Shown: piece by piece, positions 14,862-27,085 of the stretch | How positions within the stretch are numbered: the stretch's first letter is position 1 | Layout of the letters: every line of letters starts with the position of its first letter | IMG/VR virus record: IMGVR_UViG_3300009181_000033 | Location: 186,001 to 250,000 of that record | DNA length: 64,000 bases | Direction: 5' to 3' (one strand) | Translations under genes and position numbers: made by a program | The notes under the pieces: generated by a model | What the model was told of the DNA's origin: nothing | Seen by the model: only the letters and a program-made list of their open reading frames with translations | Databases searched by the model: none

Positions 14862-16607
14862 TCAACCACATTTTGAAGTGCCACATGAAGAACACGTAAC
14901 GCACCCCTCCTTATAGACCAATCCTTCGACCCCACAAGAAGCACACTTCTTATCTGAAGTTGAAATTGTTCCATCAGGAATGTGACATTTCAAAACCCTG
15001 GCAATGACCTTGGAGAAGCTTCCCATATCGCTGTGCTTATCCTTTTGTAGCTGCTCCACAAGATATTGAATAGGGACTCCATGCCTGAGAGATAGAGAAA
15101 GTGTCCTTGTGAAAGCACCATGCAAGGGATTTGCGAATAGCTCAACTACATCCTTGAAGATGAGATTGTCGTCTTCACCCACAGGAATAGAAAGATTATA
15201 AGTTGAAACGCCGTCTCGCTTACCATTCTTAATGAGTGTTCCATTTTTCACCTTCTTAGGAACTTCAACGTGGGAGGAAAGGCCGCAGAACAACTCATAA
15301 GGCTTATCATCCAGCTTGCCAACCAAAACCAGATATGTCTCGGGACCATTAGAGCCCTTAAGATTAATCCTGTGAATATCACATGGAAGTTCCTTTGGTC
15401 TCTTTGGTGCATGATGCTCAGCCATCTTCTGGGGCTGACCATCTATGGTAGTTTCCTTGGGGGTGTCCTGGACTAGAACGCCTGTCCTGCAGCCATCGCG
15501 ATAGACTGTAAATCCTTTGCAGCCTGATTCCCAGGCTTTCATGTAAACATCTGCAACGACCTCACGAGAAACATCATTTGGCAGGTTACAAGTTTTTGAG
15601 ATCGCATGACAAACCCATCGCTGGGCGACTGATTGGAGCTTGACAGACATTGGCCAATCAACATCATTCGATGTTGCCTTCCAATAAGGTGAATTCTCCA
15701 CCTTGTCTTCCCCTCCAGTAACATCCATCCACTTCTTGAAACCATGGTGATAAACTTTATACTCTTGCCACTTATCGCCCAAATGATCAACAAAGTCGAC
15801 CCTTGAATCCACATCAGCAGAAGTTATCTTCTTGCGGCGCTTATAGGAAAGAAGATAAGCAGGCTCGATGCCGCTGGTAGTTTGAGTAAGACAAGAAACA
15901 GAGCCTGCAGGCGCTGTTGTTGTCAAAGCAATATTTCTTCGACCATATTTCTTCCAATTATCCACAATGGAAGCATCAGCCTCCATTATCCTCTGAAGGA
16001 AAGAGCTCTTGGTCTCAGCCTCCCACTCGTAAGCTGGGAATGAACCTCGATCCTTCGCCATGTCCACAGAAGAACGATAGGCTGAAAGAGTAAGGGTCTT
16101 ATAAATCTTCTCTGTTAGATCAACGGAGTCCTGAGAGCCATACCTGACATTCAGTGAAGCGATTGCATCACCAAGACCTGTGATTCCAAGCCCAGTCCTT
16201 CGAGCACCAGATGCCGCATCCTTAATCTTAGTCCAAAGATTAATTTCTGCTCTCTTCACATCAGCGCTCTCAGGATCTTCACTGATCTTATTCAGGATGG
16301 CATCAACAGCTTCAATCTCAAGATCAACGAGATCGTCCATTAGCTTTTGAGCCTTCTTAGAAACATCCGTGAACCTCTCGTAATCAAAGACAGGGTTGCT
16401 GCTAAAGGGTTCCTTAACAAACTTCGTAAGATTGACAAGCAAAAGTCGACATGAATCGTAGGGACTGAGGATCAACTCAGCGCAATTATGAACCAAAAGA
16501 CCATTCGCAAAAAAATTATGAACATCATCTACAGTGAGATCATAAACATCTTCGTTGTCAACGTTTTCAATAGTATCAATTTCATCCCAAAACGCTTGTT
16601 CAATCAT
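14862..16607 (-). CDS. nrdJ: Ribonucleotide reductase (class II-like) piece 3: 41-aa IntC plus C-terminal extein
   Basis: VYDLTVDDVHNFFANGLLVHN|CAELIL; RRTGLG, TTAPAGS, TTSGIEP, AISKTCNLP, KGFTVYRDG; C-terminal Zn ribbon. Confidence 0.93.
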   Translation of the reverse strand: MIEQAFWDEIDTIENVDNEDVYDLTVDDVHNFFANGLLVHNCAELILSPYDSCRLLLVNLTKFVKEPFSSNPVFDYERFTDVSKKAQKLMDDLVDLEIEAVDAILNKISEDPESADVKRAEINLWTKIKDAASGARRTGLGITGLGDAIASLNVRYGSQDSVDLTEKIYKTLTLSAYRSSVDMAKDRGSFPAYEWEAETKSSFLQRIMEADASIVDNWKKYGRRNIALTTTAPAGSVSCLTQTTSGIEPAYLLSYKRRKKITSADVDSRVDFVDHLGDKWQEYKVYHHGFKKWMDVTGGEDKVENSPYWKATSNDVDWPMSVKLQSVAQRWVCHAISKTCNLPNDVSREVVADVYMKAWESGCKGFTVYRDGCRTGVLVQDTPKETTIDGQPQKMAEHHAPKRPKELPCDIHRINLKGSNGPETYLVLVGKLDDKPYELFCGLSSHVEVPKKVKNGTLIKNGKRDGVSTYNLSIPVGEDDNLIFKDVVELFANPLHGAFTRTLSLSLRHGVPIQYLVEQLQKDKHSDMGSFSKVIARVLKCHIPDGTISTSDKKCASCGVEGLVYKEGCVTCSSCGTSKCG

Positions 16608-17406
16608 GATTTTTAATCTCCAAGTTTCTATTCGCTTTCCATTCTTTCAACGCGGCACTCATGTTTATTCCCAAACCTTCGAGTTCGACCAACGTTAATA
16701 ACACTGAGTTAATTTCAGAATATTCTTTTTTGAACTGTTCAAACTTATCGATTCTTTCCAAAGAACCGTTCGACCATTTCGATTTAATCTCTATTATCCT
16801 TTTCAAGGAATTATTTTCATATACAAAAAAGTCCGGTCTATAATATCGACCATCAGACAAGAGATAACTTCTGCACTCGACATCCCAAATTATATTCTTT
16901 TCATCTAGCCATTTTGCATATGCATATTCCCACGAACTTCTTAACCAAACATATTTAGAATGAGATTTATTGAAATGCCAGCCACAAAGATGATGTGTGT
17001 TGTTTTTGTCTCTATCAATTAATTTGCCAGTCCAATCCCTCCAGGGATTGGTTGGACCGCTGGCATTTTTTGATCTAATTTTTTTTAAATTTTCTGTCAC
17101 ACATGATCTTCCAGTCCTCTGGCTAATGTTAAGTGATTTAAAGATGGTACGTAATCGAGTGTAAGAAACGTTTCCTATCTCTTTTGACAACAACTTAAAT
17201 CCCATTCCACATTCACCATAAAGATAATTTAGATTTGAAATCAACTTGGGACAATCTGGATTGTCCTTGTCAATATAAAAGCTAGCTGTCATGTTTCCAT
17301 TTCTCGATTTAAATTTTCTTTTTTGTTTATCGCAAGCAATGATATGAATCAGCTGTCTTGTTTCTTCAATGAGTTCTTTATTTTCAATTACAATTTGATA
17401 CATCAC
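16600..17406 (-). CDS. Homing-endonuclease-like gene (PD-(D/E)xK) between halves of RNR split intein 2
   Basis: LRSSWEYAYAKWLD..YRPDFF..IEIKS; overlaps IntC gene by 8 nt. Confidence 0.8.
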   Translation of the reverse strand: MMYQIVIENKELIEETRQLIHIIACDKQKRKFKSRNGNMTASFYIDKDNPDCPKLISNLNYLYGECGMGFKLLSKEIGNVSYTRLRTIFKSLNISQRTGRSCVTENLKKIRSKNASGPTNPWRDWTGKLIDRDKNNTHHLCGWHFNKSHSKYVWLRSSWEYAYAKWLDEKNIIWDVECRSYLLSDGRYYRPDFFVYENNSLKRIIEIKSKWSNGSLERIDKFEQFKKEYSEINSVLLTLVELEGLGINMSAALKEWKANRNLEIKNHD

Positions 17407-17448
17407 TAACCCCTACCAATCATAAGTATGGAGCAGGGGTTAGTGATG
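17401..17448 (-). promoter_or_regulatory. RBS/start-occluding hairpin with ATACTTA motif in loop
   Basis: 14-bp perfect IR CATCACTAACCCCT/AGGGGTTAGTGATG; motif at 17423-17429. Confidence 0.8.
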
Positions 17449-17458
17449 ATCATTTATT

Positions 17459-18205
17459 TCATAACGAAAGAATTTTATCTTCCTTCGTGAGATTACCAGC
17501 TTCAACCCACCCGCGCTGAGTATAGACTCTATGATCTGGCGTTAGTTTAATTTTCTTTCCTGACTTTGTTGTTATCTGCAGAATCTTGGCATTGTCTTTG
17601 GTTTTGAAAGCAATTGCAGGTTTAATTACAATTTCATTGGTTTCAATGTCAAAGGCTTGAACATAGAAATTCGCCTTGTTGTCTGACAATTCTTTTACTG
17701 TTTTTGGTCCTGCATTTGTTCGAACAATTGTGTCACCTGTAACACATGGGTTTGTTGAAACATTTCCATAACCTTTATGCTCATAAACCTGGGTTGGAGT
17801 CATCTTCTTAACGGTATCCCAGAAGAGCAACCCCGGCTCGGCAGATGTCCATGCTGAATCAATAATTTGATTCCAGAGCTCACGAGCCTTGACAACCTTG
17901 GTGATCTTGGCTTCTGTAACAGGAACATCGACTGGCCATTGAAGAGTGAAGTCAGAATCATTCTTAACACAATTCATGAAATCATCGGAGAGGCGCACAG
18001 AAATGTTCGCTCCTGTGACTTTGGTAAGATCACGCTTAATATTGACGAATGTCTCCACTTCAGGATGACTACAATTGGAAGTGTAAAACCCATTTGCAAG
18101 AATTCGATGTGTGTCCTTGACCGTAAAGTCATATGTGGTTGATTTTCCGGCCGGAGAAATCCTCTTGATCTTTGATGTTGTCTTTTGAACGTTAGTGACT
18201 TCCAT
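17459..18205 (-). CDS. nrdJ: RNR piece 2: 44-aa IntC, 109-aa extein, 95-aa IntN
   Basis: YDFTVKDTHRILANGFYTSN|CSHPEV..GANISV..AEPGLLFWD..STNP|CVTGDTIV..LTPDH..KILSL. Confidence 0.93.
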   Translation of the reverse strand: MEVTNVQKTTSKIKRISPAGKSTTYDFTVKDTHRILANGFYTSNCSHPEVETFVNIKRDLTKVTGANISVRLSDDFMNCVKNDSDFTLQWPVDVPVTEAKITKVVKARELWNQIIDSAWTSAEPGLLFWDTVKKMTPTQVYEHKGYGNVSTNPCVTGDTIVRTNAGPKTVKELSDNKANFYVQAFDIETNEIVIKPAIAFKTKDNAKILQITTKSGKKIKLTPDHRVYTQRGWVEAGNLTKEDKILSL

Positions 18206-19151
18206 TTGTAATCTCCCTAATCTTTTCTACGCAAAATTCCCAGTTATTGTTTATGTCATGTTCCCAAAAGAAAAAATACTTATAACCATTTTCTTTTGCC
18301 AGTCTTTCCTTGATTTTGTCATCAAGTTGTTTCATGACTTGATGTTCCCTGAGCGGTTTCTTACCGTCTCCCCAGAAAGCTGGATTTCCATGCCAAAAAT
18401 CCCCATGGGCCTCTATCACTGTCTTTGAATCCCTCAAAAGAAAGTCATATTGTCTTTGTGCCAATATGAAGCTGTATTTGTAATTTACATTGATTTCTTT
18501 TAGAAAATTTTCTATTTTTTGTTCAATTGAAGTTTTTCGAAAGAGTTCTTTGTGAAATTGATTTCTGGTTGCATTTCGAATCTTTTCTATCGTTTCCAAG
18601 CTGTATATTCCAGTTTTATCCTTATTCCATGGGATATACTTTCTATCAAAAATATTATCGTTGTGTTTTTTTGTTAAGATTCTCTTATCTCTGATTTGTT
18701 CGTAATTTTCTGATTTACACCAGTGAGTCTTTTTGACTGAATCATTTCTTTGAGATAACTTAATTGCGTAACAAGTGTCGGAACAAGTTCCAATTTTTTG
18801 TTTTGATCTTTTGCATTTTGCATTGCAAATCGAACAAAGTCTCCAAGACTTTTCTTCTTTCTTTAAAAGCTTGGATGCTCTTTTGACTTGATGAAGCTCT
18901 TCTGGCGTATACTTCTCTACCGTTATCTTCCTTCTTGATATCTTGGCCGTCTCCCATACTGCCTTAAATTCATACTTGTTTTCAAAAAGTTCGTGAAGTC
19001 TTTGGTTGTTTATATTAAGGGCACGAACAAGCCCTGCCGGAGAACTCATCTTAAATTCATTAACAGTTTTTCCACGATAAAAGACTGTCTCCGGCAACTC
19101 AAAATAAAGAGTCGTGGTTGTTTCATTCAACAATCTCAGGATGATTGACAT
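18192..19151 (-). CDS. Homing-endonuclease-like gene (Vsr/DUF559-like, NUMOD3) between halves of RNR split intein 1
   Basis: PWNKDK..ETIEKIR, TSIE, YDFLL..IEAHGDFWH..WEHDI. Confidence 0.8.
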   Translation of the reverse strand: MSIILRLLNETTTTLYFELPETVFYRGKTVNEFKMSSPAGLVRALNINNQRLHELFENKYEFKAVWETAKISRRKITVEKYTPEELHQVKRASKLLKKEEKSWRLCSICNAKCKRSKQKIGTCSDTCYAIKLSQRNDSVKKTHWCKSENYEQIRDKRILTKKHNDNIFDRKYIPWNKDKTGIYSLETIEKIRNATRNQFHKELFRKTSIEQKIENFLKEINVNYKYSFILAQRQYDFLLRDSKTVIEAHGDFWHGNPAFWGDGKKPLREHQVMKQLDDKIKERLAKENGYKYFFFWEHDINNNWEFCVEKIREITNGSH

Positions 19152-19163
19152 GAAACATAAGTA

Positions 19164-20030
19164 TCACCGCTCTTTAAAACTGACATCATAAAAAACAAGT
19201 TCTTCTTTATCAACATCAATATCCTTGATTTGTTTAAGGTACTCTTCGCCTGTCTCGATGTTTTTTACAACAAATTTGTGTGTTGCCGTGACCTTGATGA
19301 TTTTGCCATTTTCAGCTTCAACCTCATAAATTTCACTGTCTTCAAATTTTTGATACGCTTCAATTTCCTTCCAGCCTTCATGGGTCCAAATTTTCCCATT
19401 AAATTTGTTGTCAACAACATCGTCAATTCTTTTCCAACCTTGGTCTGTTAGTACCAAGGTAGAACCTTCAAAGCATTCAATGGTGAGCATGAGTGCTCCT
19501 CGACGACCACCTTGGGCAACCTCACGGCAAGTATTTGAAAATCTTTCCATGAAGACACCAATGCCATCTGTTGTGCCGGCAGCATTTGCAGTGTGCATGC
19601 CCTTGGGACGAATTGTGGAAATGTCAAAACCGACACCTCCACGACGCTTCATGATCTGAGCCTGCTCCTGGTCTGTGAACAGGATTCCACCATAGGAATC
19701 TTGAGGAGAAGCAATTACGAAACAATTGGATAGAGATTGAAGCTTGTACTCGTTTCCAATTGCCGACATGGGGGAACCCTGAGGAACAACTTCCCATGAA
19801 GACAACATGTCATAAATCTCACCTTCAGTCAATGGATTAGGATACTTGGACTCGATTCTGGCGAACTCCTTTGCAAGACGACGGTGCATATCGCTTGGAG
19901 TCTTCTCAAGCAAGGAACCCTCGGCATTTCTGAGAGCGTACTTCGAAATGAAGACGGAAGCTGCCAATTCATCTCCATTGAAATACTTGAGTGATGCTTC
20001 GTATGCCTCTTCTTTTGTGTATGTGTTCAT
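19164..20030 (-). CDS. nrdJ: RNR piece 1: 185-aa extein plus 103-aa IntN
   Basis: PQGSPM, SLSNCFV, RRGGVG, VAQGGRRGALMLTIE|CFEGSTLV..VTATH. Confidence 0.93.
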   Translation of the reverse strand: MNTYTKEEAYEASLKYFNGDELAASVFISKYALRNAEGSLLEKTPSDMHRRLAKEFARIESKYPNPLTEGEIYDMLSSWEVVPQGSPMSAIGNEYKLQSLSNCFVIASPQDSYGGILFTDQEQAQIMKRRGGVGFDISTIRPKGMHTANAAGTTDGIGVFMERFSNTCREVAQGGRRGALMLTIECFEGSTLVLTDQGWKRIDDVVDNKFNGKIWTHEGWKEIEAYQKFEDSEIYEVEAENGKIIKVTATHKFVVKNIETGEEYLKQIKDIDVDKEELVFYDVSFKER

Positions 20031-23856: not shown

Positions 23857-24312
23857 TCACCTCACTCCCGTGCTGCCAAACCCACCAATGCCCCTATCAG
23901 TGTCAGACAGCTTTTCACTTTTCAAGAAAGCCACCCTAATGACTTCGCTAAAAACAAGTTGAGCAATCCTGTCGCCTTTTTTTATAAAGAAGTCTTGGGC
24001 GCTTGTGTTGTAAAGAATGACCTTGATCTCACCAGTATAGTCGCTATCAATTGTTCCCGGGCTATTGAGAACAGTGATACCGTGCTTTGCCGCTAATCCA
24101 CTTCGAGGTCTTACCTGGCCCTCAAGCCCTTCCGGAATCTCAAGTCTGAGACCTGTTCCAATGAGACAACTGGCACCGGCAGGAACATTCGAATCTTCAC
24201 TGGCTCTCAGATCACATCCGGATGCCCCTTTTGTTGCGTAATGTGGAAGCAATGTATCGTCTTCAATAATATAACCAACAAATGCTAGCCTGGTGTCACT
24301 CATCTGTGTCAT
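23857..24312 (-). CDS. dut: Trimeric dUTPase
   Basis: ASGCDL, RPRSGLA, GTIDSDYTGE, GDRIAQL, RGIGGFGSTG. Confidence 0.95.
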   Translation of the reverse strand: MTQMSDTRLAFVGYIIEDDTLLPHYATKGASGCDLRASEDSNVPAGASCLIGTGLRLEIPEGLEGQVRPRSGLAAKHGITVLNSPGTIDSDYTGEIKVILYNTSAQDFFIKKGDRIAQLVFSEVIRVAFLKSEKLSDTDRGIGGFGSTGVR

Positions 24313-25249
24313 ATTCCTCCTCCTCGTTATTCTCAGTAGCACTGGCACCTGTGTTTATGATGAGAGCTTCATCGACGGCCATCATCACATACTTGTGGTA
24401 CTTTTCGTCCTTCATTACGCTAGCGAACTCAGCCTTATAGAATTTCTTCTCTGCAACGACCTCGCCAGTTTTTTCGTCCGTAACGGTGAGCTCCTTCCAA
24501 GCACCTTCACCCGAAATATTCACCCTAACACCGTTACGAACAACGCCTTTGTTTTCCTTACAATACGACTTTACCTCGTCGAAGAGGTACTCGCCTTCGA
24601 CAATTCCCTTGCCAAATATAATGTCGAATTCACACTTGCGGAACGGTGCTGCAACCTTATTCTTCTTGATAGTAACCGTGGTATGAATTCCAATTACGTT
24701 GCCGGCCTTGTCCTTCACTGGATTACCACTACCAAGAGATATCCTCACTGAAGAATGGAAAGGAATTGCCTTTCCACCGGGTGTTACAGTGGGGTCACCG
24801 TACATGGTATTGTGGGAAAGAATTCCATTTGAGAAATAAGAATGTGAATTCTCGACTTCAATATCAAGAATGTCTGTTTGCTGATTTAAATGAACAATTT
24901 TAGCATATGTCCACCCAAGATCCTGATGAAAGAATTGAACATTTTCACAATCAACTAAAGCTATCGCTTCAACCCAGTGGGGCTTTGAACCACCAACACA
25001 AACCCAAAATCTATGAAGAGGAGAAACATTAAGATTGAACTCTTCAATTCTATAAATGTCAGTACAAGACTTTCTGACTATGTTTTTGATCAATTCCCAG
25101 CCCTTGTTGCCATAAGAATCCTGGGTAAAAACTTCGTAACCATGGTTCTCAACATTAACCGGTTCATCAAAGGGCATTTCTTCATAAGAAGAGCCCATAC
25201 TTTCAAATAGCTTAGAAATCGAAATTTGTTCTTGATTCGTGTAGCTCAT
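24296..25249 (-). CDS. recA: RecA C-terminal piece preceded by 147-aa IntC
   Basis: VSPLHRF, DIEVENSHSYFSNGILSHN|TMYGDPTVTPGGKAIPFHSSVRI..KNKVAAPFR. Confidence 0.92.
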   Translation of the reverse strand: MSYTNQEQISISKLFESMGSSYEEMPFDEPVNVENHGYEVFTQDSYGNKGWELIKNIVRKSCTDIYRIEEFNLNVSPLHRFWVCVGGSKPHWVEAIALVDCENVQFFHQDLGWTYAKIVHLNQQTDILDIEVENSHSYFSNGILSHNTMYGDPTVTPGGKAIPFHSSVRISLGSGNPVKDKAGNVIGIHTTVTIKKNKVAAPFRKCEFDIIFGKGIVEGEYLFDEVKSYCKENKGVVRNGVRVNISGEGAWKELTVTDEKTGEVVAEKKFYKAEFASVMKDEKYHKYVMMAVDEALIINTGASATENNEEEEYDTDE

Positions 25250-25433
25250 ATTCTCTTATCTTTCCCAAAATCCAATCTTTGGAATTGGAGTCTTTCTTTC
25301 TGATATCGTTTTCCCACACAGTGATCAATTTGTATCCTTTAATTTTAGCGCAAGATTTTTTTGCAAAATCCCTTCGCATTAGCTTCTTTTGCATGTAAAG
25401 CATTTCTTTTCCATGCAAATAAGCATCAATCAA
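25212..25433 (-). pseudogene. C-terminal remnant of a Vsr/DUF559-like endonuclease between RecA halves
   Basis: AKIKGYKLITVWENDI aligns with AKENGYKYFFFWEHDI of 18192-19151; catalytic core absent. Confidence 0.7.
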
Positions 25434-25439
25434 GTTTGA

Positions 25440-26171
25440 TTATGCCACCCTTTTTCTCACAGTTAGTTGAGTGCTTGGGCCAACACAACCAATTTTTTCT
25501 CGAATTTGATTAAGGCAGAGAAGAGTGACGTTGTTCTGACCAATGACTCCGGTGATCTTGCGCATGCCTTTTGAGATAACTCGGGCCTGCAGACCGATCG
25601 TATTGTCTTCATATTCACCGTCAAGCTCGGCCTTGGGTGAAGTGGCTGCGACCGAATCCCAAATAACAAGAATAGGAATGTTCTTGTCCAGGACTTGTTT
25701 GGCTTTGAGAATAGTCGACTCAATAATTGAGAAGACTTCCTCGGTCATATGAGAATCACAATAAACGAATCTCTTCTTCACGTCGATGCCCATGTCGGCA
25801 AGCTTCTGGACAGGCGTGGCATTCTCCGTGTCGATGTATACAACCAGCCCACCCATTGCTTGGGTGACTGCTGCAGCGTGATAAGCCAAGTGCGACTTAC
25901 CGCAAGAAGGAGGGCCTGAAATTTCAATAATCCTCCCTTCTGGATATCCTCCAGATGTCGTGTTCCTGATTGCATAATTTAGCTGAATGGAGCCCGTATC
26001 AATCCAGCGCTTCACAACAGTTGGTGCATCCATTTCGGAGAGATTGAAGGCAATCCTTGAGCCAAATTCCTTGTTGATGGACGATATGAGGTCCTTCATC
26101 ATGTCGTCAACATCGCCTTTTTTAGTAAGCTGAAATCCCTCAGGGTCTACTGTTTTTTCTTTTTTTGCCAT
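25440..26171 (-). CDS. recA: RecA N-terminal piece ending in 15-aa IntN
   Basis: GRIIEISGPPSCGKS, YIDTE, WDSVAA, GLQARVISKGMRK, LNQIREKIG|CVGPSTQLTVRKRVA-stop. Confidence 0.92.
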   Translation of the reverse strand: MAKKEKTVDPEGFQLTKKGDVDDMMKDLISSINKEFGSRIAFNLSEMDAPTVVKRWIDTGSIQLNYAIRNTTSGGYPEGRIIEISGPPSCGKSHLAYHAAAVTQAMGGLVVYIDTENATPVQKLADMGIDVKKRFVYCDSHMTEEVFSIIESTILKAKQVLDKNIPILVIWDSVAATSPKAELDGEYEDNTIGLQARVISKGMRKITGVIGQNNVTLLCLNQIREKIGCVGPSTQLTVRKRVA

Positions 26172-26203
26172 TTTTCCTCAAAAATATTTTATTCAAAACG
26201 AAC

Positions 26204-26226
26204 GGGGCGGGTTCTTCGCCCGCCCC
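26204..26226 (-). terminator. Hairpin/terminator after SSB gene
   Basis: GGGGCGGG/CCCGCCCC stem followed by TTCGTTTT on minus strand. Confidence 0.65.
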
Positions 26227-26233
26227 TTCACTC

Positions 26234-27085
26234 TCACTCGTCGTCCATTAGCTCTGCGAAAGCGTCGTCAAGCGATTGTTTCTTTGTGCTTGGCTTTGCC
26301 GCAACTGGCTCTGACTTCTTTGGTGCTGGCACCTTTTTCTCGGTCGGCTTCAGCTCAGCAGCAAGATTATCGAGCTCATCAGAAGAAGTTGGTCCACGTG
26401 ATGTTCCGGCATTCGTGTCCTCAGAAGCTGTGTCACCACTTAGCCAGCTATTGAGAACTGCCTCGATCTCAGAAGGAGACTTGATGGGATACATATCGTC
26501 AATATTTGGAATCGACTCAAGCCACTTAGAGCTCACTGAATGATCATCATGTAGCTTCGTCGGCCTCCGGGCCGGATCGACCATCGTATCCATGAACTGC
26601 TTTCCTGGTGCCTGAGACAGCGTCACCTTTAGATCAAAGCCTTCAGCAGGTGAGAGAATGTCTCCAACCTCTTCGTCAAGGAAGAAGCTCAACATCCTCT
26701 GGTAAACAATCTTACCGAAGGACCAAACAAGAACACCTTGATCCTCCTGACCACGGACAATGACTGGGGCATAACATCGCATCTTGGGAGCGAGCTTCTT
26801 AGCAAGAACCCTGTCATCAGGCTTGCCACTGCTGTAAAGTTTGCGAATCAGATCATGGATAGGATCTGGCTTTCCAAACTGATTGGGTGCAAGGATGCCC
26901 TTATTCTCACCAAGGTAATAGAACCACCTCTCGAGGAAAGGCTGTCCGTCACCTGAATTCTTCCAAGGGAGACACCGAATCTTGTGCTCTCCAACCTTCG
27001 GCTTCCACATCTGGACCGAAGACGTCCTCTTGACACCGCTTAGCTCCGCAACACGACGCTTAATTGCCTCTAGATCAATAGCCAT
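26234..27085 (-). CDS. ssDNA-binding protein (gp32-like)
   Basis: WKP..KIRCLP, EGFDLKV, acidic tail LDDAFAELMDDE; next to recA. Confidence 0.8.
   Translation of the reverse strand: MAIDLEAIKRRVAELSGVKRTSSVQMWKPKVGEHKIRCLPWKNSGDGQPFLERWFYYLGENKGILAPNQFGKPDPIHDLIRKLYSSGKPDDRVLAKKLAPKMRCYAPVIVRGQEDQGVLVWSFGKIVYQRMLSFFLDEEVGDILSPAEGFDLKVTLSQAPGKQFMDTMVDPARRPTKLHDDHSVSSKWLESIPNIDDMYPIKSPSEIEAVLNSWLSGDTASEDTNAGTSRGPTSSDELDNLAAELKPTEKKVPAPKKSEPVAAKPSTKKQSLDDAFAELMDDE

Follow-up and report, generated by a model that had tools for sequence, protein, structure and literature searches.

Split inteins that occur in nature and have an atypical break point are few: VidaL and PolB16 OarG, both split at the S1 site, have N-terminal pieces (IntN) of 16 and 15 amino acids (aa), and AceL-TerL and GOS-TerL, both split at S2, have IntN of 25 and 37 aa (PMC13014065, PMC10189870). 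The S1 site is defined as the position after beta-strand 2 and before helix alpha-1 (PMC13014065). A very short IntN can be made as a synthetic peptide and ligated to a recombinant protein, and few natural ones have been characterized. Split inteins also occur in "fractured genes," in which the N-terminal part of a host protein with IntN, a free-standing homing endonuclease gene, and the C-terminal intein piece (IntC) with the C-terminal part of the host follow one another (Dassa et al. 2009, PMC2677866). Here, we describe a recA locus with a comparable layout in a stretch of 64,000 nucleotides (nt; the window), bases 186001 to 250000 of the 297,894-bp viral record IMGVR_UViG_3300009181_000033. 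Direct terminal repeats are present at the ends of the record, the source genome is a jumbo phage, and most of the public runs that carry window DNA are labelled freshwater metagenomes. Very probably, the locus is the fractured recA of a 298-kb freshwater jumbo phage, in which a class-1-type intein in the DNA-binding loop L2 is broken at S1 into a 15-aa IntN and a 147-aa IntC, the two halves would splice in trans, and a Vsr-like homing endonuclease gene would have made and spread the split before it was recently killed by a 688-bp deletion.

Anatomy of the split recA locus

Along the minus strand, a gp32-like gene is followed by RecA-N, a short open reading frame (ORF), IntC-RecA-C, a dUTPase gene, a small ORF, and an actin-like gene. 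The RecA-N gene (25440-26171, minus strand, 243 aa) has the tail ...NQIREKIG followed by CVGPSTQLTVRKRVA and TAA, and the next long gene (24296-25249, minus strand, 317 aa) opens with 147 aa (24809-25249) ending in ...SNGILSHN, after which the RecA sequence resumes as TMYGDPT / TMYGDPTVTPGGKAIPFH. The interval 24809-25487 is bounded exactly by the Cys1 and Asn147 codons. The first-pass annotation of this DNA had described RecA-N as ending in IREKIG, CVGPSTQLTVRKRVA, and a stop, with a net charge of +3 on the intein piece, and all of this was borne out. The parts of the locus, in the order of transcription, are as follows.

25488..26171, minus strand: RecA N-extein, 228 aa, ending in ...NQIREKIG (Pfam RecA, E 9e-43; PHROG UvsX-like recombinase, E 2e-55)
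25443..25487, minus strand: IntN, 15 aa (CVGPSTQLTVRKRVA), net charge +3; TAA stop at 25440-25442
25379..25414, minus strand: 5' stub of the endonuclease gene, with the original ATG, 11 codons, and a stop (DNA alignment to the relative L018 and direct reading)
25387..25394, minus strand: deletion junction, 8-bp repeat ATGCAAAA (overlap of two blastn blocks against L018)
25212..25394, minus strand: 3' remnant of a Vsr-like (EDxHD) endonuclease gene, 60 codons and a stop (similarity to the L018 and L002 endonucleases)
24809..25249, minus strand: IntC, 147 aa, net charge -12, with SPLH (S76, H79), D129, and H146-N147 (AlphaFold model, Foldseek, homologues)
24296..24808, minus strand: RecA C-extein, 170 aa and a stop, beginning T+1 MYGDPT (Pfam RecA, E 4e-16)

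An intein-less 397-aa RecA homologue, P0029, served as the reference for both exteins. The N-extein is 90% identical to its residues 1-227 and the C-extein, from the second residue, 78% identical to its residues 229-397, with Thr+1 of the window at the position of Val228; the two exteins tile P0029 with neither gap nor overlap. In the alignment with E. coli RecA, ...NQIREKIG before Cys1 matches ...NQIRMKIG before V201, placing the insertion between G200 and V201, a point that we take, from established knowledge of the RecA structure, to fall inside loop L2. The spliced protein would be a RecA of 398 aa with the junction ...KIG-TMYGDP... and an intact L2. The earlier proposal that splicing makes loop L2 whole agrees with the extein alignment of this predicted product, and the insertion-site comparison, also proposed earlier, has the RecA exteins abutting exactly on intein-less RecA. 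The locus had no match by blastn in the GenBank phage collection.

Identity, fold, and docking of the intein halves

The element is a class-1-type intein with an atypical split at S1. Sequence, profile, and predicted fold agree with the first-pass annotation of an atypically split RecA intein with a 15-aa IntN, a 147-aa IntC, Cys1, and Thr+1. Among solved inteins, a profile from 25 IntC homologues matched gp41-1 (E 3e-5), Aes PolB1 (E 5e-4), and Spl DnaX (E 6e-3); by the same profile, similarity to VidaL (6VGV) was not significant (E 0.49). The AlphaFold2 model of IntC (predicted local distance difference test score of 92) begins with a helix at residues 11-17, followed by a beta-rich horseshoe. 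Foldseek returned 38 PDB matches to this model at E<=1e-3, mostly inteins or HINT domains; the best is the Mycobacterium tuberculosis RecA intein (E 1e-5, probability 1.0), ranks 1-13 are all inteins, and the first non-intein, at rank 14, is a BIL2 HINT domain. IntC is thus predicted to adopt the HINT fold. With the profile matches and the exact tiling of the exteins, this is far more than chance would give.

Conservation follows the catalytic positions. Five residues, S76 and H79 of block B, D129 of block F, and the terminal H146 and N147, do not vary among the 25 homologues (34-98% identity to the window protein), T+1 (T148) is kept in at least 90% of IntC homologues, and Cys1 follows ...KIG in the window and in all relative loci whose RecA-N tail was read. 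The ratio of nonsynonymous to synonymous substitution rates (dN/dS) of IntC is 0.05 for L002 versus L007 and 0.18 for both L023 versus L002 and the window versus L018; among pairs further apart, synonymous sites have reached saturation and dN is 0.18-0.45. These values point to purifying selection on IntC. The IntC frame opens just 2 codons ahead of the ATG at 25249, which is its sole possible start.

The two halves carry opposite charges, +3 on IntN and -12 on IntC, of which -8 lies within residues 1-45. When IntC was modelled together with the 29 C-terminal residues of RecA-N, the complex scored 0.78, and the best of three controls reached 0.21; the mark used was attained by 58 of 80 solved complexes and by 2 of 110 mismatched pairs, a calibration that is only rough for a short peptide and an author-supplied alignment. 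The predicted interface brings RecA-N residues 227-243 into contact with IntC residues 1-12, 73-80, 125-130, 138-142, and 145-147, including the IntC N-terminal segment and blocks B, F, and G, and the model accordingly has IntN docking onto the catalytic blocks of IntC.

A split family among relatives

The first 120 matches of a word-indexed search included about 40 clusters of 280- to 330-aa IntC+RecA-C proteins with 41-88% identity, and an exhaustive profile search yielded 668 representatives at E<=1e-3, 200 of them at <=1e-10. The 150 best representatives include 112 IntC+RecA-C proteins whose start coincides with the split site; others are IntC-only fragments (16) or contiguous RecA-N+intein(+RecA-C) proteins (18), and one, by blast, is an endonuclease+IntC+RecA-C protein, with a second fusion, the HNH-type P0139, seen from its sequence. 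IntN has 13-17 aa in all 10 relative loci with a readable RecA-N tail, and the 9 distinct IntN sequences, the window counted, share the motif CV[GSA]PxTx[LVI][TS][VF]R[RK]. A stop after IntN and a separate IntC start were found in all relatives, across many independent assemblies. By comparison among these relatives, the RecA split is a conserved family trait and not an accident.

Two relatives encode the endonuclease and IntC-RecA-C in a single ORF, as an in-frame fusion, with a Vsr-like endonuclease in P0134 and an HNH-type one in P0139, indicating that the endonuclease type at the RecA site varies and that endonuclease-intein fusions occur. Loop L2 of RecA is an intein hotspot, with a second site a few residues downstream, after GDP(x), that holds a contiguous mini-intein in P0062 and an S1-split intein with an IntN of about 15 aa in P0163 (...MFGDP, CVSPETKIQIRKRSV, stop). 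Bacterial-type RecAs have contiguous relatives of the intein after NPE or NPETT, and some RecA proteins carry two inteins. An uncharacterized insertion of about 1.1 kb lies early in RecA-C of L015. The hotspot reading draws on P0163, P0062, L015, P0124, P0140, P0142, and P0189.

No paper describing a RecA/UvsX split intein was found in the open literature. Neugebauer 2017 or Burton 2020 may list "VidaL UvsX" inteins.

The endonuclease gene between the halves

An intact endonuclease gene, which the first-pass annotation had suggested seeking in relatives, is present in most of them, L018 included. ORFs of 274-320 aa lie between RecA-N and IntC in L002, L005, L006, L008, L009, L011, L012, L013, L016, L018, and L023, usually abutting or overlapping the IntC start (0-62 nt). 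Their profile matched Vsr (1CW0, E 5e-4) as well as I-Bth0305I (3R3P, E 7e-5), single ORFs match the Pfam families MTES_1575, DUF559, and Vsr, and the catalytic block FD...IEVNGDYWH...RRD is kept. In L009, an IS607-like pair (L009:786-2625), made up of a 208-aa serine-recombinase-like ORF and a 410-aa TnpB-like ORF (translations judged by eye), separates RecA-N from the endonuclease gene and brings the gap to 2830 nt.

At this place, the window has a 73-aa ORF with a TTG start (25212-25433, minus strand) that overlaps the IntC gene by 38 nt. Its earlier description as an endonuclease remnant holds for the last 60 codons (25394 down to 25215), which are 98% identical to the C terminus of the 296-aa endonuclease of L018 (L018:2648-3538) and 44% identical to that of L002; the first ~13 codons are the old 5' region of the gene in another frame. 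The remnant begins after the IEVNGDYWH block and the catalytic E, D, H core is absent, indicating a dead relic of the Vsr-like / EDxHD family. The 73-aa ORF itself matched no Pfam family and gave weak matches in PHROGs; its identity came from the relatives instead. This ORF lies in the RecA-N frame, separated from it by TAA and two codons (25212-25442, minus strand), and nothing in this arrangement points to a function. Read-through of the RecA-N stop into it was considered and rejected, as the product would be without IntC and the shared frame is a by-product of the deletion. A retained D.Y.H catalytic motif (DAYLH versus GDYWH) was likewise rejected, the DNA alignment with L018 identifying this segment as the old 5' region in another frame.

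Other relatives have also lost the gene: L007 has endonuclease residues 170-289 alone, with an internal stop, and L015 has no endonuclease gene, only a 29-nt spacer with an AAAGGAG ribosome-binding site. Endonuclease decay has arisen independently in L007 and L015. L021 was dropped as a candidate endonuclease-free allele, because its upstream ORF has no RecA-N match on the plus strand and runs off the contig end; that ORF may be the endonuclease.

A recent 688-bp deletion

The DNA alignment of the window with L018 consists of two blocks, free of gaps and sharing 8 nt, and the window lacks 688 bp of the endonuclease gene. The junction (25387-25394) is the 8-mer ATGCAAAA, left from two 8-bp direct repeats. 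The original endonuclease ATG (25414) is kept and now opens the shifted frame MEKKCFTCKRS, with a stop at 25379-25381.

To check the deletion, contigs from public runs were aligned on 24200-26300. For X1, the likely source run, the Logan assembly contains a 97,272-bp contig, with a depth of about 15, that is identical to the window over this interval. Two other studies (X2 and X4) yielded near-identical contigs, with 0-3 differences per junction piece, whose match ends exactly at 25394 or 25387; past the junction, they match the L018 endonuclease gene flanking the missing segment at 29-30 of 30 bases. At the retained endonuclease start, the L018 and X2 contigs read MEKKCFTCKKTIRQ... The deletion is a real, recent allele that is polymorphic among near-identical phages. 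The same contigs gave no sign of a mis-assembled contiguous intein, the outcome that had been named as grounds for abandoning the split. X1 also contains a 2,029-bp contig (depth of about 6) that matches the window only at 25392-25409 and 26246-26284 and is probably from a diverged co-occurring relative of the phage.

The suggestion that the remnant persists for translational coupling is unsupported by these data. The kept start at 25414 opens an 11-codon frame whose stop lies about 130 nt ahead of the IntC start, and relatives do without such a remnant, L015 with its short spacer and own ribosome-binding site and L007 with a dead, stop-containing remnant. The remnant is still present because the deletion is recent, and its last 38 nt are constrained since they code for the IntC N terminus.

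Probable footprint of recent homing

Nucleotide identity between the window and L018 changes along the locus as follows.

RecA-N extein: 76.9%
About 150 nt upstream of the insertion: 83-93% (30-nt bins)
IntN: 100%
Spacer and 5' end of the endonuclease gene: 97.9%
3' remnant of the endonuclease gene: 97.9%
IntC: 98.4%
About 60 nt downstream of the insertion: 90-100% (30-nt bins)
RecA-C extein: 76.1%

The cassette is far more alike than the host gene and the flanks are graded, suggestive of a recent endonuclease-driven transfer with co-conversion of the adjoining DNA. We infer that the intein cassette has homed recently in these phages.

Order of the split and the decay

Which came first, the split or the loss of the endonuclease? 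The first-pass annotation had the split fixed after the endonuclease gene decayed, which is not supported, as the same split stands beside an intact free-standing endonuclease gene in most relatives. Among these are L018, whose cassette is 98-100% identical, and the near-identical X2 and X4 phages. Hence, the split predates the decay, which is the very recent 688-bp deletion.

Contiguous versions of the intein occur at the same RecA site, for example in P0128 and P0163, and others at L2 sites after GDP(x), NPE, and NPETT. In a FastTree phylogeny of 173 IntC domains, which is midpoint-rooted and built on few columns with many forks weakly supported, the clade of the window (support 95) holds 68 split forms, 7 contiguous forms at this site (site A), and 2 endonuclease-fused forms. 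The contiguous tips are scattered, requiring 6 changes, at least 3 of them forced by well-supported branches, and each stands beside a split sister, as in P0128/P0089 (80% identity, support 99) and P0140/P0158 (79% identity, support 99). P0128 has a Met exactly where its split relatives begin IntC. The tree and this Met favour repeated re-fusion after endonuclease loss over decay followed by splitting.

Taken as a whole, a wider proposal is more tentative and somewhat doubtful: that the RecA-L2 S1-split inteins form a large, hitherto undescribed family of no fewer than 112 clusters (50% identity), in which IntN spans 13-17 aa and some pieces, at 13-14 aa, would be below the characterized record of 15 aa, that the split site is the landing site of a free-standing homing endonuclease, and that homing, truncation, loss, and re-fusion into contiguous mini-inteins can all be found in extant alleles.

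Proposed pathway and alternative explanations

No terminator-like site lies between the recA pieces and a strong one lies upstream of RecA-N, suggesting that RecA-N and IntC-RecA-C would be transcribed together. The HINT fold would then be completed when the basic IntN docks into its acidic and largely pre-folded partner, IntC. Class-1 splicing chemistry with Cys1 and Thr+1 is well established. By this route, trans-splicing would proceed through a Cys1 thioester, attack by Thr+1, Asn147 cyclization, and an O-to-N shift, releasing the 398-aa RecA (...KIG-TMYGDP...) and the freed intein pieces. The split itself would have been created, and spread among phages, by the free-standing Vsr-like (EDxHD) homing endonuclease gene between the halves, and the gene has very recently been inactivated in this phage, where there remain a dead 5' stub and the 3' remnant of 60 codons, which overlaps the IntC start by its final 38 nt.

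Several points weigh against this pathway. Splicing activity is deduced from sequence and predicted structure, and inteins with Cys1 and Thr+1 can be slow. The docking is a model score, and the similar solved complex of VidaL may have informed the predictor. On IntC, Pfam Intein_splicing scores 19.3 bits, below the curated cut-off of 35.8; only blocks F and G match, because the N-terminal third is on another protein. The evidence for the deletion comes from assembled contigs, not raw reads, and loss of the endonuclease gene may have altered the expression of the downstream half.

The alternatives differ in which part of the pathway they replace. The intein halves could serve as a non-covalent interaction module for the RecA fragments, with no peptide bond made; the predicted IntN-IntC complex speaks to binding, not chemistry, and fragmented phage enzymes assembled via interaction domains derived from mobile elements are known, as for nrdA (PMC3045599). 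We consider this very unlikely, because residues needed for chemistry alone (Cys1, block-B Ser/His, block-F Asp, the His-Asn end, and Thr+1) are invariant or nearly so down to 34% identity, and the break is inside loop L2, a place at which RecA would hardly tolerate a bulky appendage of 162 aa. It is quite unlikely, too, that the locus is a decaying pseudogene in this phage, the deletion having also disabled RecA-C expression and left RecA non-functional. The IntC gene of relatives abuts or overlaps the endonuclease ORF (0-62 nt) and so may depend on its translation, and the original endonuclease frame of the window ends about 130 nt upstream of the IntC start. However, IntN and IntC are 100% and 98.4% identical in nucleotides to those of L018, which has an intact endonuclease gene, with no disabling change; a purine-rich stretch (GGGAAAGATAAGAGAAT) stands just before the ATG at 25249; both halves are intact in L015 and L007 without a functional endonuclease ORF; and the deletion allele is carried on a 97-kb contig at a depth of about 15 in its sample.

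An assembly artefact, in which the contig had collapsed or mis-joined either a contiguous intein or a full endonuclease gene, is extremely improbable. The junction does fall at a short repeat in a metagenome assembly, and the longer allele exists in other samples, but an 8-bp repeat is far under assembler k-mer sizes, the independent Logan assembly of the likely source run has a 97,272-bp contig identical over 24200-26300, and the IntN stop and separate IntC start recur in all relatives. The remaining alternative is the history supposed at the outset, namely, a contiguous intein whose internal endonuclease decayed, after which the split was fixed and the remnant kept for translational coupling. 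Contiguous relatives at the same site (P0128 and P0163) and the 38-nt overlap of the remnant with the IntC start would suit it, yet the endonuclease has a start and a stop of its own, being free-standing and no in-frame domain, and co-occurs with the split in most relatives, the closest included. In the midpoint-rooted tree, the contiguous site-A forms are scattered single tips beside split sisters (7 contiguous to 68 split), and the Met of P0128 fits secondary re-fusion, making this history unlikely. Trans-splicing of a split made by the endonuclease gene thus remains the preferred explanation.

Other inteins of the phage and its relatives

The ribonucleotide reductase (RNR) gene of the window (14862-20030, minus strand) is fractured twice, in the same manner as recA, into three ORFs by two canonically split inteins, with a free-standing endonuclease-like gene between the halves of each.

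19164-20030, minus strand: RNR-N and IntN
18192-19151, minus strand: intact Vsr-like endonuclease of 319 aa, from the family that is also found at the RecA locus
17459-18205, minus strand: IntC, RNR-mid, and IntN2
16600-17406, minus strand: second nuclease-like ORF, 268 aa
14862-16607, minus strand: IntC2 and RNR-C

Elsewhere in the genome of the same phage, outside the window, a Pfam Intein_splicing match above the cut-off lies inside a 1048-aa open frame (G000:C1:259535-260503) and is probably a contiguous intein. The dUTPase downstream of recA in L002 (L002:4950-5890) is apparently intein-split, with a 193-aa dUTPase ORF followed by a 97-aa ORF (Intein_splicing and dUTPase); the dUTPase of the window (23857-24348) looks contiguous.

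Comparison with known systems

The locus predicts that a recombinase on which the phage depends is put together post-translationally inside its own DNA-binding loop. It documents how an atypical split site can originate, with an endonuclease gene at S1 instead of the canonical site, and offers a view, at the level of populations, of the homing-endonuclease cycle in jumbo phages. More than 100 diverged variants with Cys1/Thr+1 and IntN of 13-17 aa form a candidate pool for semisynthesis, possibly with mutually orthogonal members.

The M. tuberculosis RecA intein sits at a different RecA site. It shares the RecA host and is the best structural match (PDB 2IN0 and others) but is contiguous and only 17-18% identical. 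VidaL (PDB 6VGV/6VGW; Neugebauer 2017 and Burton 2020, as cited in PMC13014065) resembles the window intein in its S1 split, its ultra-short basic IntN (16 versus 15 aa), a large helix-first IntC, and its dependence on Cys1, and it superposes on the IntC model with a root mean square deviation of 2.8 A over 110 columns. The exteins of the published construct read ESG, Cys ... HN, SGK, in contrast to KIG, Cys ... HN, TMY in the window, suggesting that the host protein or the site of VidaL differs. Residue +1 is Ser in that construct and Thr in the window, whose IntC has 147 aa. The window intein is predicted to work like VidaL without being a close sequence relative.

PolB16 OarG (PMC10189870) shares the S1 split, an origin in metagenomic phage-like DNA, and an IntN of 15 aa, the shortest characterized; some relatives of the window intein, with L016 and L002 among them, have 13- to 14-aa IntN, none of them characterized. 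Unlike the window intein, which has Cys1/Thr+1 and an invariant block-B His, PolB16 OarG is cysteine-less with Ser1/Ser+1, has a 168-aa IntC and a dispensable block-B His, and resides in a PolB polymerase. AceL-TerL and GOS-TerL (PMC13014065) are likewise natural inteins that are atypically split and have a short IntN, from phage genes in aquatic metagenomes, but their break falls at S2, after helix alpha-1, their IntN have 25 and 37 aa, and they reside in the terminase large subunit.

In gene organization, the closest likeness is to the fractured genes of Dassa et al. 2009 (PMC2677866), which share with the RecA locus the layout, phage hosts of DNA metabolism, the same Vsr-like endonuclease family, and the presence of some endonuclease-less alleles. 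That set, with gp41-1, NrdJ-1, IMPDH-1, and others, has free-standing endonuclease genes of the Vsr-like or GIY-YIG type. RecA is not among the host enzymes listed there, and the inteins of that set that were tested (gp41-1, gp41-8, and NrdJ-1) are described as canonically split, with IntN of about 100-120 aa and IntC of about 35-50 aa, in contrast to the S1 split of RecA. The endonuclease that defines such genes is intact in most relatives and in X2 and X4; the window keeps only the 5' stub and the 60-codon 3' remnant. On gene order and homology, then, the window locus appears to belong to the known fractured gene type. The best solved match to the relatives' endonuclease, I-Bth0305I (3R3P, E 7e-5; PMC3239194), also targets phage recA, but it is encoded in a group I intron, whereas the relatives' endonuclease lies between intein halves and the window remnant has no catalytic motif.

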